Below are positions 32,916-39,641 of a stretch of DNA of 64,000 nt, one piece after another. A program made the position numbers and the translations under genes. Location of the stretch: positions 186,001 through 250,000 of the IMG/VR virus record IMGVR_UViG_3300044972_002389, one strand, 5' to 3'. Under the pieces are notes generated by a model. That model was not told the DNA's origin, made no database searches, and was given only the letters and a program-made list of their open reading frames with translations. Each line of letters starts with the position of its first letter. The first letter of the stretch is position 1.

Positions 32916-33947
32916 ATGACTATCAATCTAGACAATGTTGATTTTTCAAAAGTAATTGCCATAACTGATGTGCATTTTGGCATGCGGAACAACTCCAAAC
33001 AGCACAACACTTGGTGTACTGAGTTTTTGGAGTTTGTGGTCAAACGAGCACAAGAGCTGAAAATCAAAACACTCTTGTTTTTGGGCGACTGGAGTCACAA
33101 CCGCAACAGTGTGAACATCAGCACACTCAATTACAGCCACAATGGCATGAAACTGCTAAACAACAATTTTGACAATGTGATAATGCTCTTGGGCAACCAT
33201 GATCTCTATTTTCGAGATACTCTAGAGCTGCACAGTATTCCCTATGCACAGGATTTTTCAAATATTCACCTAATTGACAAAATCACCACAGTCAAAGACT
33301 ATTGTTTTGTTCCTTGGTTGGTGGGTGATGAGTATAAGTTGATTCAAAAAATCAAACAGCCTTATTTGTTTTGTCATGCTGAAATTGCCAAGTTCCGGAT
33401 GAATGCCATGGTGGAAATGCCCGATCATGGCGGCTTGAACAGTGAACACTTTCAAAATCAAAAATTGGTGTTCAGTGGGCATTTTCACAAAAGGCAGCGA
33501 AAGGGCAACATTTGTTATATTGGCAATGCCTTTCCTCACAACTTTGCAGATGCGGGAGACGATGATAGAGGGTTGATGATCTGGACTCCTGGAACTGATC
33601 CCATATTTGAAAAATGGCTTAGTGCACCCAAGTATCGCACGTATAACCTTACAGAGGCACTTCAGGATCCTACCGGCTTGATAGACAACAAAACTTTCGC
33701 ACGGATAACAGTAGATGCTGACTTAACTTATGAAGACCTTGCCTTCATTAGAGAGTTATTTGAAACTCAGCTAGCTGCCTTGGATGTGAGTTTTATTCAT
33801 GGCAGAAGTGATGGAGATGACACTGTTCTTGATGATAGTGAAATCAATTTTGAAAGCGTTGACTCAATTGTGGTGTCACATTTGAATAGTATTGAAAGCA
33901 CTACAATGAACAAACAACGCTTGATTGAAATCTATCAGAGTATTTGA
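32916..33947 (+). CDS. recombination endonuclease subunit (T4 gp47 / SbcD / Mre11-like)
   Basis: TDVHFG, LGDW, GNHD, FSGHFH metallophosphoesterase motifs. Confidence 0.92.
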   Translation: MTINLDNVDFSKVIAITDVHFGMRNNSKQHNTWCTEFLEFVVKRAQELKIKTLLFLGDWSHNRNSVNISTLNYSHNGMKLLNNNFDNVIMLLGNHDLYFRDTLELHSIPYAQDFSNIHLIDKITTVKDYCFVPWLVGDEYKLIQKIKQPYLFCHAEIAKFRMNAMVEMPDHGGLNSEHFQNQKLVFSGHFHKRQRKGNICYIGNAFPHNFADAGDDDRGLMIWTPGTDPIFEKWLSAPKYRTYNLTEALQDPTGLIDNKTFARITVDADLTYEDLAFIRELFETQLAALDVSFIHGRSDGDDTVLDDSEINFESVDSIVVSHLNSIESTTMNKQRLIEIYQSI

Positions 33948-35725
33948 ACTTGATCATCCTCAAAAACGTCACAATCAAAAACTTCATGAGTGTGGGTGCT
34001 GTTACACAATCAGTTACTCTCACACAACCTGGCTTGACTCTTGTATTGGGCGAGAATCTAGACTTGGGCGGCAACGGCAACCGGAATGGTGTTGGCAAAT
34101 CGACGCTGATTTCAGCCATTTGTTATGCCCTGTATGGTCAAGCTCTTACTAACATCAAGAAAAACAATCTCATCAACAGCATCAACAAAAAGAACATGGT
34201 GGTGAGTATTGAGTTTGAAGCCCACGGCAACAGCTACAAAATTGAACGTGGCCGTGCCCCTAGTTTTTTCCGCTATGTTGTAAATGATGAATCAGTAAAT
34301 GAAAACAAAAGTGCAGACGAAGCTCAAGGCGAAAACAAAGATACTCAGAAAGAGATTGAGAAGGTATTGGGCATCAGCCACACCATGTTCAAACACATTG
34401 TGGCTTTGAACACCTATACTGAGCCATTTTTGAGCATGGGTGCTGGAAAACAGCGAGAAATAATTGAAGAGCTGTTGGGAATTACATTACTGTCTCAGAA
34501 GGCAGAAAACCTCAAAAAGCTTATTCAAACAACCAAACAAACTATTGAACAAGAAGAGTTCAAAATACATACTATCAAAAACAGCAATACACGTATTTTG
34601 AGCACTATTGAAAGTTTGAATCAAAAAACCCAACAGTGGGATACTCAACATCAGAACAAAATTCAAGACTTGGAAAATGCACTAGATGCTTTGAGTCATC
34701 TTGATGTTGAGCAGGAAATTCAAAGTCACAAAGACAATCTTGTGTATCGTGAACTTCAAACAGCATTGAAGAATGTGCGCAGCCAAAGCCAAACAAAAAC
34801 ACAGCATGGAACACAGCTGAAGGCGCAACAAAACAACTGGTTAACTCAGTATAGTCAAATTCAAGACCACAACTGCGCAATGTGTGGTCAAAAGATTCAT
34901 GACGAGAAACAAACACATCTGCTGGACGACCTTGAGCACAAAATTACCAAACTGGACAGCAGCATTCAAACACTGGAACAGGAATGCCTGAGTTTGACAC
35001 AAGAACTGGATGAGCTCATGGGTCTGTCTAGTGCTGTATCGCTAAACCAAACATTTTACAAAAGCATTGATGAGGCATATGAGCATCGAAACAGTCTCAC
35101 ACTTCTTAGTGGTGAACTGGACAAACTTAAGCTTGAAACCAATCCTTATCAAGCCCAAGTGGGTAATTTAAATGACACACTGCAAGAAGTCACTTATGAT
35201 TCACTAAATGAACTCAGCCAACTCAAAGACCATCAAGAGTTTCTCTTGAAGCTGCTAACAAACAAAGACAGCTTCATCCGAAAGCGTATTATTGATCAAA
35301 ACCTCAGCTACTTGAATCACAGACTGGGTGAATATCTAGCTGGATTGATGTTGCCACACCAAGTTAAATTCAGCAACGACTTGGGAGTTGAGATCATGCA
35401 TATGGGCGTAGACTTTGACTTTGACAGTCTCAGCCGAGGTGAACGCACAAGAGTTTGTTTGGCACTCAGCTGGGCATTCCGAGACATTTTTGAAAACATG
35501 AACACCAGCATCAACTTCATGGCTGTTGATGAGATCCTTGATGTGGGACTTGACAGCACAGGACTTGAAAGATCTCTAGAGACGCTTAAGGCTATGAGCA
35601 GAGATCGGAACAAGAACATTTTGTTGATCTCACATAGAGAAGAGCTAACAAGTCGCTGCGATCGAGTTTTGTATGTTATCAAAGAGTTAGGTTTCACTCG
35701 TTTCAGCTATGAAAGCGGTGAGTAA
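33944..35725 (+). CDS. recombination ATPase subunit (T4 gp46 / SbcC / Rad50-like)
   Basis: NGVGKST Walker A, CAMCGQ zinc hook, LSRGE signature, VDE Walker B, ISH. Confidence 0.93.
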   Translation: MNLIILKNVTIKNFMSVGAVTQSVTLTQPGLTLVLGENLDLGGNGNRNGVGKSTLISAICYALYGQALTNIKKNNLINSINKKNMVVSIEFEAHGNSYKIERGRAPSFFRYVVNDESVNENKSADEAQGENKDTQKEIEKVLGISHTMFKHIVALNTYTEPFLSMGAGKQREIIEELLGITLLSQKAENLKKLIQTTKQTIEQEEFKIHTIKNSNTRILSTIESLNQKTQQWDTQHQNKIQDLENALDALSHLDVEQEIQSHKDNLVYRELQTALKNVRSQSQTKTQHGTQLKAQQNNWLTQYSQIQDHNCAMCGQKIHDEKQTHLLDDLEHKITKLDSSIQTLEQECLSLTQELDELMGLSSAVSLNQTFYKSIDEAYEHRNSLTLLSGELDKLKLETNPYQAQVGNLNDTLQEVTYDSLNELSQLKDHQEFLLKLLTNKDSFIRKRIIDQNLSYLNHRLGEYLAGLMLPHQVKFSNDLGVEIMHMGVDFDFDSLSRGERTRVCLALSWAFRDIFENMNTSINFMAVDEILDVGLDSTGLERSLETLKAMSRDRNKNILLISHREELTSRCDRVLYVIKELGFTRFSYESGE

Positions 35726-35810
35726 TTATCTGTACTCCATAAATATAGATATATGCCGGTCACGACCCTGGCAGGTCCACCGGCTCTATCGCTTTAAGGG
35801 AGCAACAGCT

Positions 35811-36635
35811 ATGTCTATTTATCGTAATATCAAACCCTTTGGGTTTTATGTGTATGCCTACTTAAGAAAAACAACATCCAACAATGGTCCTGCAGGAACC
35901 CCTTATTATATTGGAAAAGGGACCGGCATACGTTACAAAGAAAACCACGGAACTCTACCTGTACCAAAAGAAGCATGGAGGATTGTTGTCCTTGAACAAG
36001 GATTAACTAATCTTGGTGCTGTTGCGCTCGAAAGAAGGCTGATACTCTGGTGGGGACGCCTGGATAATAACACAGGTATATTACACAATCGAACTGATGG
36101 CGGGGATGGGGCAGTTGGGAAGATAGTCTCTGATGAATCAAGAATGAAAGCAAGTGTTAACAATTGTGGCAAAAAAAGAAGTGCAGAAACAATCAAGAAC
36201 ATAAAAGATGCATTATCTCTTATCGACAGGTCAGGAGAGAATCATCCGTTATATGGCAAAAAGCATTCTGATGAAGCTAGATCTAAAATGAGCGAAGCTA
36301 AAAAAGGCAGGTCCTATGAAGAAATTTATGGCCCAAAAGCAGAAGAGATGCGAGCTGCACGCTCACAAAAATCTCGGGGACGAAGTCTGTCTGCTGAGAC
36401 CAAAGAAAAGATAAGTTTAGCAAATCGAGGCAAGAAAAAACCTGCAGGCTTTGGAGTCCGAATGTCCGCAGTAAGGTCTGGCCAAAAAGTCTCTGAAGAA
36501 ATTTTGAAGAAGAGAGCACAGATATTCGAAGCAACAAAACAAACTTGTGAACATTGCGGGAATATCTTTGGTTTAGCGAACTATATCAGATGGCATGGTC
36601 CTAATTGCAAAACTCAACCTAACCAACTACTATAG
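35811..36635 (+). CDS. GIY-YIG homing endonuclease with NUMOD3 repeats (Seg-like)
   Basis: FYVYAYLR...PYYIGKG..R, L.N.TDGGDG, GKKHSDEARSKMS; GGGAG RBS before ATG 35811; TAAATA at 35740. Confidence 0.88.
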   Translation: MSIYRNIKPFGFYVYAYLRKTTSNNGPAGTPYYIGKGTGIRYKENHGTLPVPKEAWRIVVLEQGLTNLGAVALERRLILWWGRLDNNTGILHNRTDGGDGAVGKIVSDESRMKASVNNCGKKRSAETIKNIKDALSLIDRSGENHPLYGKKHSDEARSKMSEAKKGRSYEEIYGPKAEEMRAARSQKSRGRSLSAETKEKISLANRGKKKPAGFGVRMSAVRSGQKVSEEILKKRAQIFEATKQTCEHCGNIFGLANYIRWHGPNCKTQPNQLL

Positions 36636-36650
36636 GCGATTCGATTGGGA

Positions 36651-37166
36651 TTATACACCAGCAGTATAACTCAGTTCAGCAATCTTCAGCTTGTTTTGTT
36701 CAAAAAATGGCTCAAACTCTGTTATTACAAAGGTTTTGTAACGTGCGTGGTTTTCAACCGTGAAGTCAGCCAAATGTTTTTGATCAAAACAAGCATAACT
36801 TCCTTTGTGATTGATGCGTATGACAACAAACCACAAATCTTCTGGATCACATGTGTCAAGTGTTTGCTCTATCCAAGCATCCAGTTGTTTGATATCTCCA
36901 TTGCACATGAGTCGATGCCACGGAAAGTCTTGATAAAACTTACTTTCAATCACCAGCTTTTTCATATGGGAAGGTGGAATGAGATCACTTTTGAAGTAGC
37001 TGATTTGCGTAGCATCCATAGTGTCTTTTCTCTTGGTGTTTGCTCCTCCAATGAAGGCACCAGAATTAGGAACCCTAATAAATTTGGCTTCATATAACGT
37101 TGTGAGAAACTTGGCTATCCGTAATTCGCCTGCATTTCCTTTTGCCTTGCCTTTGGACCCTGCCAT
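36651..37166 (-). CDS. Holliday junction resolvase (Hjc-like PD-(D/E)xK)
   Basis: K.KG...E..IA..L, RVPNSGA, SDL, IESKFY motifs. Confidence 0.75.
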   Translation of the reverse strand: MAGSKGKAKGNAGELRIAKFLTTLYEAKFIRVPNSGAFIGGANTKRKDTMDATQISYFKSDLIPPSHMKKLVIESKFYQDFPWHRLMCNGDIKQLDAWIEQTLDTCDPEDLWFVVIRINHKGSYACFDQKHLADFTVENHARYKTFVITEFEPFFEQNKLKIAELSYTAGV

Positions 37167-37205
37167 ATGTTTTTTCCTGTAATCCAGAAAAAGCTCTGGA
37201 AGTCT

Positions 37206-37234
37206 TTGATTTTATAGTTTTAGATGGCTATAAT
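37206..37234 (+). promoter_or_regulatory. sigma70-type promoter for the TnpB-like gene
   Basis: TTGATT-17 bp-TATAAT with GC extension. Confidence 0.65.
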
Positions 37235-37258
37235 CAAAATAACAAAAGAGCATTTCAA

Positions 37259-38068
37259 ATGAAGCACAACAAGCCACAACACCGCAGCATTTTTATTGTA
37301 GTTGATCCAGTAGATCAAAATCGGCTCAATAGTTTTTTCCGACAAGAGTTGGGATTTTACAATACCCTTGTAGGAACCTTTGGAAGTCGTGTAAGAGCAT
37401 TTCCACAAACTATTCTCAACATCACACACGATCAAGCATCACTCTTTTGTGATCTAGCCAAATACAATCTCAACATTCGCGAATTGGTGAAAAAGCCTCA
37501 AGAATGGCCTGAACAACTGAAAAGTTATTTTCCAGTTGCTTTTGACAGACTCACACAAAAAACAATTTTGACCGAAGCGCAAATTATGATGTTTGAATCT
37601 GCCGGAGCCAATCGCTGGATTATGATTCCAGAAGCCAAAAAACAGATGGCTAGAGCAGTTATTGATTTTTACAAAGAGCAAGCAGACATTTTGGCTCATC
37701 CCCAATCAAGCGATATAATTGAGGTGGCTTACAAGACACCACCCAGCAGCTTGAGTGAGTTGGAAATCAGCAACAAACGTCATGCACAGATCCCTCGTAA
37801 TGAAATCAAATACAAATACAACAACACTGAACAACATACAGAAATTTGGACTCCGTTAACTACAAAACCCATTATTATTCCGCATTTTAACCTTAACGAA
37901 TACAATCGATGGACAACAGCAATAGTCAAGCAAGAGAGTGGTAGATTCTGTGAATACAACACACCTTGGGTAATTGACTTCAAAAATACAAAAAACAATT
38001 ATCTTTTGAAATATCTAGACAGCACAGCACGTAGTCCAGGCAATTATAGAATCAGCAACTACGCATAA
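37259..38068 (+). CDS. 269-aa protein resembling the TnpB/Cas12f WED-REC half, with no RuvC domain
   Basis: N-terminal RSIFIVVDP.DQNRL..FF...LGFYN.LV, mid helix ARAVIDFY...YKTPP, beta-rich IWTP...TAIVKQ.SG...WVIDF; ends where RuvC-I would start. The ORF is solid, the family call is tentative. Confidence 0.55.
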   Translation: MKHNKPQHRSIFIVVDPVDQNRLNSFFRQELGFYNTLVGTFGSRVRAFPQTILNITHDQASLFCDLAKYNLNIRELVKKPQEWPEQLKSYFPVAFDRLTQKTILTEAQIMMFESAGANRWIMIPEAKKQMARAVIDFYKEQADILAHPQSSDIIEVAYKTPPSSLSELEISNKRHAQIPRNEIKYKYNNTEQHTEIWTPLTTKPIIIPHFNLNEYNRWTTAIVKQESGRFCEYNTPWVIDFKNTKNNYLLKYLDSTARSPGNYRISNYA

Positions 38069-38090
38069 CAGAGTATATTTTTAAAACATA

Positions 38091-38454
38091 GTGGCTTTAT
38101 ATGATGGTGTAGTGTCCATCCGTATCTACCAGGCGCGAAGGCCGGGGAAAATTGCGTATGAGGGTTTACGGTTCTATGCCCTCGCCACAAAAGTGAACAA
38201 AAAGGATCCAGCCTCTCACTGTCCCGTGACGCTGGAAGGGGTTCAGTCAACAGCCTGTCTGACTGAATTCCCTGCGTGTGTGATGAGCACATAACCGAGA
38301 AGGCAGCTCCATGAGCATAAGTCCGAGAAGAGAGTCAGGAACGCTGGAAATAGGTTCTCCGCCAGCTGGAAGCAATTCCCAAGACGAGACAGGCAGGCCG
38401 AAGCCCTATACGAAAGCCTTTTCACACTTCTCCTCCCGGTGGGGAGAAGTGTGA
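38091..38454 (+). ncRNA. candidate structured non-coding RNA (~365 nt) with pseudoknot
   Basis: At least six complementary stems, a loop-to-distal 8-bp pairing (38253-38260 with 38387-38394) and a terminal 12-bp stem (38422-38454); GC-rich island with no credible ORF; strand is assumed. Confidence 0.65.
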
Positions 38455-38574
38455 CTTCCTCCCTAACGAAATACCCAGAACTATTATCAGTCCAACAAGT
38501 ATCCTATTCCAGATCCAATAATATCATCAATAAGATCATTGAGATTCATACTAGATCACGCCCAGCTAAAATTA

Positions 38575-38820
38575 TCACTTCTTTGATTGAGCCTTCCTAT
38601 AAGCTTCGGCTTGCATCTCATAGTGTTTGGAAATAGTTCCACTCAAAGATTTCATCTGTGAAGTGGTGAGACGCCAAGCTTCACTGTAGGTGAGTCCTCC
38701 GTTCATGTAATACACTAGGTTGGCAATATCGCTTTCAATCATTTCCACTTCTTTTTCGCAGCTTCTCAGTACTTGGGTGATGGCTACATGATCACCCCTG
38801 AGAAGCTTTAGTCGAAAAAA
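38575..38820 (-). CDS. gp51-like baseplate/tail assembly ORF, probably the -1 frameshift extension of the upstream gene (not in ORF track)
   Basis: Open -1 frame FFRLKLLRGD...EMIESDIANLVYYMNGGLTYSEAWRLT...KAQSKK*. Confidence 0.75.
   Translation of the reverse strand, partial: FFRLKLLRGDHVAITQVLRSCEKEVEMIESDIANLVYYMNGGLTYSEAWRLTTSQMKSLSGTISKHYEMQAEAYRKAQSKK
38760..38820 (-). other. programmed -1 ribosomal frameshift signal
   Basis: T TTT TTC heptamer (38820-38814), 6-nt spacer, then a 10+7 bp stem-loop (38807-38760). Confidence 0.75.
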
Positions 38821-39641
38821 CTTGTGGGATCAAAGTCAATTGACTGGCTCCAAGTGTGTGAGCAACCGTCGCATTGAAAAGAGGTTTCGGTATCAATACC
38901 AGTTTTGTTGAGCTCTTTCAACTTGTCGATGATGGCGTTGGCACTGGTTGTGGGAATACCTTTCACAAACTCTTGAATGTATTCTTGATTGGTGACCAGT
39001 TCACCACTACTGATTATTTTGATTTCAGTTATGCTCATGGCCATGATGTCCAATGTGCGTTTGGCCATGTGATTCACTTGTTTGGTCACACTACTGATCT
39101 TTTCTGCATCAGTTGTGTCTGTTTCTTGTAACACTTTGATGCTTCTGGCTTGTTCCACTTCATTCAACAGTTGTAGATTTCTCTGCTCAAAGTTGTAAGG
39201 ACGCAGGAAAACTTGGAGTGCTCCATCTATTTCAATATAGGTGGGGCCTTCAACATAAGTTTGTGTTTCGATAAATGCAGAGAGGTCTATACCAAAGTTG
39301 TGCTCTTTTCCACAACTGGGACATGTGGTGTCTATTTCCATAGTTGACCCTGCACTGGCAATTCTTATGGCAACAAGTAGGGTGTTGATGTCAGGCTCCA
39401 CAAGCTTCTTGGGATCTTTGACTCCAGGAACACAGTTTCGGAAAACACTCAACAATGCATCGCCATTCAACAGCGCATCAGGAGTTTTCAACATGATTTG
39501 ATCAATAGCAGTCAACGGATACACTGCCATTTCGCCATTGGCTGAAGTCTCAAGGAAATCACTAGGATAAAATTTGCCTCGTGTTGGCAATTGTGCATAG
39601 GCCTTGGGTGTGTGAAAGTATTGACTCAATGGATTACTCAT
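38808..39641 (-). CDS. baseplate hub assembly / tail chaperone (T4 gp26-like)
   Basis: NPL..YF..P..Y..LPT.G.FY, KTPDALLNG, LVAIRIAS, CPSC...C..C, FDPTSFF end. Confidence 0.8.
   Translation of the reverse strand: MSNPLSQYFHTPKAYAQLPTRGKFYPSDFLETSANGEMAVYPLTAIDQIMLKTPDALLNGDALLSVFRNCVPGVKDPKKLVEPDINTLLVAIRIASAGSTMEIDTTCPSCGKEHNFGIDLSAFIETQTYVEGPTYIEIDGALQVFLRPYNFEQRNLQLLNEVEQARSIKVLQETDTTDAEKISSVTKQVNHMAKRTLDIMAMSITEIKIISSGELVTNQEYIQEFVKGIPTTSANAIIDKLKELNKTGIDTETSFQCDGCSHTWSQSIDFDPTSFFD

Follow-up and report, generated by a model that had tools for sequence, protein, structure and literature searches.

We identified a strongly conserved, folded non-coding RNA of roughly 390 nt with two pseudoknots (38089-38476, + strand), which matches no known RNA family in Rfam and appears to be restricted to viruses, namely uncultured, mostly freshwater, phages with contigs up to 518 kb. 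It lies directly behind a gene for a 269-aa protein whose predicted fold is the WED+REC half of a TnpB/Cas12f-type protein without the nuclease half, implying that the two may form a ribonucleoprotein. All coordinates, unless assigned to another locus, refer to the window, a 64,000-nt stretch of IMG/VR record IMGVR_UViG_3300044972_002389 (positions 186,001 to 250,000).

The region belongs to a T4-like jumbo-phage genome. Upstream are an SbcC/gp46-like gene (33944-35725), a NUMOD3 homing endonuclease ORF (35709-36635, +) and a 308-codon ORF (37142-38068), and downstream, on the other strand, are a T4-type baseplate hub gene (38808-39641) and a small ORF. The NUMOD3 ORF overlaps the end of the gp46-like gene and is absent from the syntenic place in the related loci fetched, so it looks like a recent insertion in this lineage. 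We also noticed that the hub gene ends ...AGT TTT TTC GAC TAA, and that from the slippery T_TTT_TTC the -1 frame stays open for 81 codons, down to 38575 (38575-38822, - strand). The CGAAAAAACTT stretch and the downstream ORF are conserved in all related loci. This is a candidate programmed -1 frameshift that would extend the hub protein.

Between the two convergent genes lies a GC-rich island without a long ORF, with a GC content of 0.52-0.55 at 38100-38500 against 0.33-0.43 in the flanks. To test whether this island is structured, we compared its folding energy with that of shuffled controls. The + strand folds at -135.9 kcal/mol (z = -3.7, 0 of 100 shuffles as good), while the - strand gives z = -2.0. 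Rfam gave no match at gathering thresholds over the whole window, and a sensitive scan of the region at E up to 10 gave none with E below 0.03; the best sub-threshold hit was PtaRNA1, 23.5 bits against a threshold of 47, on the opposite strand over the terminal hairpin only. ARAGORN found no tRNA or tmRNA in the window. The preliminary description had proposed a pseudoknotted non-coding RNA of an unlisted class, and these results, together with the covariation described below, support that interpretation. The RNA may already appear anonymously among the more than 10,000 candidate structured RNAs predicted from IMG/VR (PMC10690425).

To analyze the conservation of the RNA, we retrieved related loci (numbered with the prefix L below) through the two flanking proteins, through exact look-ups of protein homologues, through profile scans and through the core motif of the RNA itself. 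The conserved block runs from 38089 to 38476, about 22 nt beyond the end given in the preliminary description, and similarity to relatives falls away sharply on both sides. The RNA was better conserved than its neighbours at every divergence level tested. Against L023, it is 95.9% identical, where the upstream gene is 84.9% and the hub gene 80.8%; against L058 the figures are 92.1% and 74.3%, and against L032 83.9% and 69.4%. The window's lineage has about 100 extra bases between the RNA and the convergent small ORF, which hold a 20-codon ATG ORF read by eye (38489-38551, - strand) and are missing in L023.

We next modelled 14 helices with 75 pairs in an alignment of 12 sequences. Canonical pairs make up 91.7% of cells, 33 pairs show changes on both sides, and there are 63 extra pair types. 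When the 3' partners were slid by 1-3 columns, these figures fell to 38-43%, 6-11 pairs and 24-36 types. G-U cells outnumber A-C cells 57 to 19, which, like the better fold z-score, points to the + strand. Nearly every pairing listed in the preliminary description is kept by compensatory changes in relatives, including the pseudoknot between a hairpin loop and a distal strand.

The 5' domain (38091-38188) is a four-way junction closed by P1 (38091-95 with 38184-88) and holding P2 (38103-07 with 38116-20), P3 (38121-24 with 38153-56, with an inner hairpin) and P4 (38160-64 with 38179-83). P1, GTGGC/GCCAC in the window, covaries to UCGGC/GCCGA and CCAGC/GCUGG; P2, GATGG/CCATC, covaries to GGCAG/CUGCU and GACAG/CUGUC; and P4, GAGGG/CCCTC, covaries to GGAGG/CCUCC. 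P1 and P2 are fully paired in each of their three versions, and the same layout is visible in distant homologues such as L064. The invariant single strand AAAGGAU (38200-38206) is followed by the P5 hairpin (38207-38236, UCCAGC..UCAC/GUGA..GCUGGA), which occurs in five covarying versions and is paired at 6 of 6 positions in all 12 sequences. The P6 hairpin (38237-38273) is kept with many compensatory changes, with U-A changed to U-G in L023. Its loop (38253-38259, GCCTGTC) is the 5' strand of the first pseudoknot, PK1, and pairs with GACAGGC at 38388-38394. PK1 is fully paired (7 of 7) in all 12 sequences, in six sequence versions. An automated pseudoknot search in more distant homologues was too noisy to use, but further versions are visible there by eye, including a single compensatory exchange between L072 and L095.

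Downstream of P6, the P7 hairpin (38276-38292), in which U-A changes to G-C by covariation, is followed by the invariant AACCGAG, of which ACCGAG is invariant in 23 sequences. The preliminary description had noted an internal tandem in this area, but this is not a conserved repeat. Instead, GAGAA in its first copy (38297-38301) pairs with the loop of P10 (UUCUC, 38355-38359), forming a second pseudoknot, PK2. Its two variable positions covary in four versions, GAGAA/UUCUC, GAGUG/CACUC, GAGUA/UACUC and GAGCG/CGCUC, which pair in 22 of 23 sequences, the one miss being a mis-hit of the search pattern in L090. P9 (38306-38316) is variable in length and occurs as GCUC/GAGC, GCUG/CAGC and GUCC/GGAC. 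The P10 hairpin (38343-38366), GCTGG/CCAGC, covaries to ACUGG/CCAGU, its closing pair changing from G-C to A-U, and its conserved loop AAAUAGGUUCUCCG carries the 3' strand of PK2; this hairpin is the most conserved stretch of the family. P11 (38368-38379) is a small hairpin with the versions GGAA/UUCC and GGAC/GUCC. The terminal hairpin P13 (38426-38450) is present in every homologue, including distant ones; however, of the 12 bp described preliminarily, only the inner 8 bp (38426-33 with 38443-50) are conserved, and the outer C is an A in relatives.

One feature of the 3' part remains unexplained. A short motif occurs twice, first as CCUAUACGAAAGCC in the loop of a short closing stem, P12 (38405-38418), and again in the conserved single-stranded 3' tail as CCCUAACGAAAUACC (38462-38476), right after which similarity to relatives ends. 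The two copies change in parallel from lineage to lineage (ACGAAA, AUCGGAA, ACCAGAA, AUCAGAA, AUGAAAAA, ACGAAU), which suggests that one trans-acting partner reads both. No complementary sequence was found.

To determine how widely the RNA occurs, we searched with the core pattern CTGGAA-N(1-3)-TAGGNNCTCNGCCAG. It found 34 viral contigs, and nhmmer confirmed all of them as homologues over most of the RNA. The same pattern found 24 places in 185,579 prokaryotic genomes, about the number expected by chance, and none extended beyond the 22-nt pattern. Searches of cultured phages with the region, the upstream protein and three distant members of its family all returned nothing. The nearest cultured relative by baseplate hub is Pseudomonas phage PA5oct (NC_071039.1), at 37% identity; its syntenic place between the hub gene and gp46 (L037:6531-7195) has a 664-nt stretch with no annotated gene, which does not match the RNA models. 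Directly after the RNA, L064 (9170-9200) and the equivalent places in L066, L069, L076 and L093 have two tandem perfect hairpins, the second reading CUGAUGAGC...GCUCAUCA. They look like terminators, and the window's lineage has none.

The preliminary description had set the upstream protein aside, but it turned out to be the main clue to function. Although the ORF opens at 37142, homologues support the ATG at 37259 as the start, giving a 269-aa protein (37259-38068, +) whose stop lies 20 nt before the RNA. Sequence methods found nothing in Pfam, PHROGs or the PDB, even with profiles; Pfam scans of all 141 aligned members and HMM searches against PDB sequences gave no link to TnpB, and an ESM Atlas feature search gave only noise-level hits. 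An exhaustive HMM search found 194 clusters at 50% identity. Those examined are mostly 220-345 aa with a few short fragments, and none of them is the size of a full TnpB (about 400 aa).

A first structure model from a 16-sequence alignment (pLDDT 74) gave no usable Foldseek hits, whereas an AlphaFold2 model from a 141-sequence alignment was confident (pLDDT 92.5, pTM 0.89). We searched this model against 48,161 PDB representative chains with VIA-align, which does not rely on Foldseek. Ranks 1-27 are all TnpB, Cas12f, Cas12m, Cas12k or Fanzor chains, with Z from 10.0 to 5.4, including Fanzor2, dCas12f, ISDra2 TnpB residues 1-173 and AsCas12f residues 0-207, and unrelated folds follow at Z 5.3 or less. 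Model residues about 1-243 align with the N-terminal 170-300 residues of the hits, which in the compact hits (TnpB, Cas12f, dCas12f, Fanzor2) are the WED+REC part. Foldseek independently listed Cas12n (probability up to 0.96), Cas12f1 (up to 0.99), Cas12p, Cas12k and TnpB, and the best AFDB clusters are 'Transposase' entries. The protein ends where the RuvC domain would begin, and the zinc finger is also absent. Thus, its predicted fold is the guide-RNA- and DNA-recognition lobe of a TnpB/Cas12f-type effector without any nuclease lobe.

To examine the linkage between protein and RNA, we compared the gene order of the related loci. The synteny gp47-gp46-PDDEXK-[protein]-RNA-hub-portal is constant in all loci, and no TnpA or CRISPR array was seen. 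In about 15 distinct protein-bearing lineages, down to roughly 30-40% protein identity, the RNA follows the protein gene on the same strand, as ωRNA follows tnpB. Three protein-bearing loci (L026, L061, L062) gave no match to the RNA models, although L026 and L062 show the hallmark motifs by eye. The reverse does not hold. At least five lineages (L064, the L073/76/89/94 group, L066, the L069/78/81 group, and L072/95) carry an intact RNA at the same syntenic place but no WED+REC gene in the fetched 6-14 kb, in the order gp46, PDDEXK_15, a small ORF, the RNA, then the hub. A scan of these contigs, up to 518 kb in size, with narrow peptide patterns did not find the gene elsewhere, but as only 6-14 kb could be read, it may still sit there.

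In four of these lineages, the small ORF encodes a basic protein of 115-120 aa, whereas L072/95 carry an unrelated 94-aa ORF; two further lineages carry both the WED+REC gene and a 91-95-aa member of the small basic family. Members of this family (91-120 aa, with motifs HWFP..YG..EF..KLSDxQRxxLW) sit directly upstream of the RNA at L064:8355-8711, L066:5206-5553(-), L069:4116-4478(-) and L076:2202-2558(-), and also in L063 and L090. They have no Pfam match, and none is present in the window. The 118-aa and 185-aa proteins upstream of the RNA in these lineages are not split halves of the WED+REC protein (hhalign probability at most about 1%), and the 185-aa protein is PDDEXK_15. The variable stretch between gp46 and the RNA also carries accessory genes in some phages, an Acb1 anti-CBASS gene in L072 (7248-7742, +) and an ART-PolyVal domain gene in L026 (1317-1856). 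The neighbourhood may be a hotspot for counter-defence genes.

We then looked for a guide and for expression. The sequence 3' of the tail differs completely between scaffolds that are 96% identical, which is what a guide boundary looks like, but a neutral spacer would look the same. It has no match of 11 nt or more in the 64-kb window, to which the search was confined, and the tail motifs are not enriched there. Eight public RNA-labelled runs contain parts of the RNA, and in one of them 36% of the RNA's sampled words are found, against 5% of a 2.7-kb stretch around it. However, only low-depth contigs cover the region, two of the runs are probably DNA, and one true metatranscriptome contig spans the end of the protein gene and the RNA. 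Because the RNA is also the best-conserved part, this does not prove expression.

Taking into account the fold and the arrangement, we propose that the RNA is the ωRNA-like partner of this nuclease-less TnpB descendant, a reading we consider about as likely as not. Together they would form a nuclease-free ribonucleoprotein, fixed in the core genome of a clade of T4-like jumbo phages, that recognises a nucleic acid by sequence and binds it rather than cuts it. The oversized RNA would supply scaffold functions that the lost protein half used to supply, and the recognition segment would be either the variable sequence 3' of 38476 or the twin motif. Transcription as a discrete RNA, binding to the protein and any guide function are inferred, whereas the RNA structure and its conservation, the predicted protein fold and the genomic linkage are directly supported. 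TnpB and Cas12 guide RNAs are known to be pseudoknotted (PMC10097598). Lineages with the RNA but no adjacent WED+REC gene, the lack of an identified guide or target within the window, and the absence of any sequence-level link to TnpB all weigh against this proposal.

A serious, though less favoured, alternative is an autonomous 'ornate' structured RNA in the manner of ROOL, GOLLD or raiA, in which the RNA itself is the functional unit (scaffold, decoy, ribozyme or self-assembling particle) and the WED+REC protein and the small basic protein are interchangeable helpers or simply neighbours. In line with this, the RNA is the only constant of the locus, occurring behind the WED+REC gene, behind WED+REC plus a small basic protein, or behind the small basic protein alone. 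It is more conserved than any neighbouring gene, its features do not track whether the WED+REC gene is present, and the parallel change of the twin motif is expected if one trans partner reads both copies. On the other hand, the RNA directly follows the gene in the exact tnpB-ωRNA arrangement in about 15 lineages, and a protein with the predicted fold of the guide-RNA-holding half of TnpB is an unlikely chance neighbour of a pseudoknotted RNA.

A bolder possibility, which we regard as unlikely but which would be striking if true, is an RNA-dominated descendant of TnpB in which the protein has shrunk to its RNA/DNA-recognition lobe, and in some phages has been lost or replaced by a protein of about 100 aa, while the double-pseudoknot RNA has become the main functional body. 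It would act as a programmable, nuclease-free recognition particle of lytic jumbo phages, possibly reading its target through the two co-varying twin motifs or recruiting the adjacent PD-(D/E)xK nuclease.

It is doubtful that the RNA guides or scaffolds this neighbouring nuclease (Pfam PDDEXK_15), rebuilding an RNA-directed nuclease from separate parts with WED+REC or the small basic protein as an adaptor. The likely nuclease gene of the window, a 171-aa ORF (36651-37166, -), is inferred from synteny, as Pfam PF24608 hits the syntenic gene in related loci. A PDDEXK_15 gene lies next to the locus in most loci read, whichever protein sits between it and the RNA, and is co-directional with the RNA in L064, L066, L069, L072 and L033. 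However, gene order in T4-like core regions is inherited vertically, so adjacency alone is weak evidence, and in the window's clade the nuclease gene points the other way. A cis-acting element (3' UTR, terminator or processing signal), or a divergent RNase P RNA, tmRNA or group I intron missed by Rfam, is very unlikely, because, although the RNA is close to and co-directional with the upstream gene, is joined to it in one metatranscriptome contig, and has a terminal hairpin that could act as a terminator, about 390 nt, 13 helices and two covarying pseudoknots are far more than such a role needs, the upstream gene differs between lineages, no Rfam or tmRNA match and no interrupted gene or exons were found, and the loop-to-strand pseudoknots are not of the group I P3-P7 core topology.

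Compared with TnpB-ωRNA (OMEGA, IS200/IS605) and miniature Cas12f-sgRNA, the predicted protein fold matches their WED+REC lobe, the RNA is encoded at the 3' side of the gene on the same strand, and the RNA is large relative to the protein; it is also pseudoknotted, although its pseudoknots need not be equivalent to that of the ωRNA. Here, however, the RuvC and zinc-finger half is missing entirely, the RNA is about 390 nt against probably some 130-230 nt and starts after the stop codon instead of overlapping the ORF, there is no transposon, TnpA or CRISPR array, the position in the phage core genome is fixed, no guide was identified, and no sequence similarity is detectable. Because the protein family is invisible to sequence searches, it has escaped the published censuses of TnpB.

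TldR and dCas12f-σE are likewise domesticated, immobile, non-cutting descendants of TnpB/Cas12f that work with a single scaffold-plus-guide RNA, and some are phage-encoded (bioRxiv 10.64898/2026.09.22.753285; PMC13472631). Unlike the present protein, they keep a degenerate or truncated RuvC domain and a recognisable TnpB sequence, occur in temperate phages or bacterial chromosomes, and have identified promoter targets, while here the RNA is several times larger, the carriers look like lytic jumbo myoviruses and no target is known. Every exapted form described so far (TldR, dCas12f-σE, Cas12k, Cas12m) keeps the RuvC fold, and we found no description of a RuvC-less family; a large family that has discarded it completely, paired with an RNA about three times the usual size, would show how far function can shift from protein to RNA in this lineage.

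IscB/IsrB-ωRNA (HEARO RNA) also combines a small protein with a very large, multi-helix, pseudoknotted RNA that takes over protein functions, but its protein fold is unrelated (RuvC/HNH/PLMP), its RNA lies upstream with a 5' guide, and the Rfam HEARO model does not match. Finally, ROOL, GOLLD and raiA are, like this RNA, large, intricately folded, phage-associated RNAs of unknown function that are conserved more strongly than their surroundings. Their Rfam models do not match, and their size and architecture differ. Even without the protein link, the RNA described here is a well-supported new class of large structured RNA held at a fixed place in the core genome of uncultured jumbo phages, and it has a specific protein neighbour with an RNA-binding pedigree.
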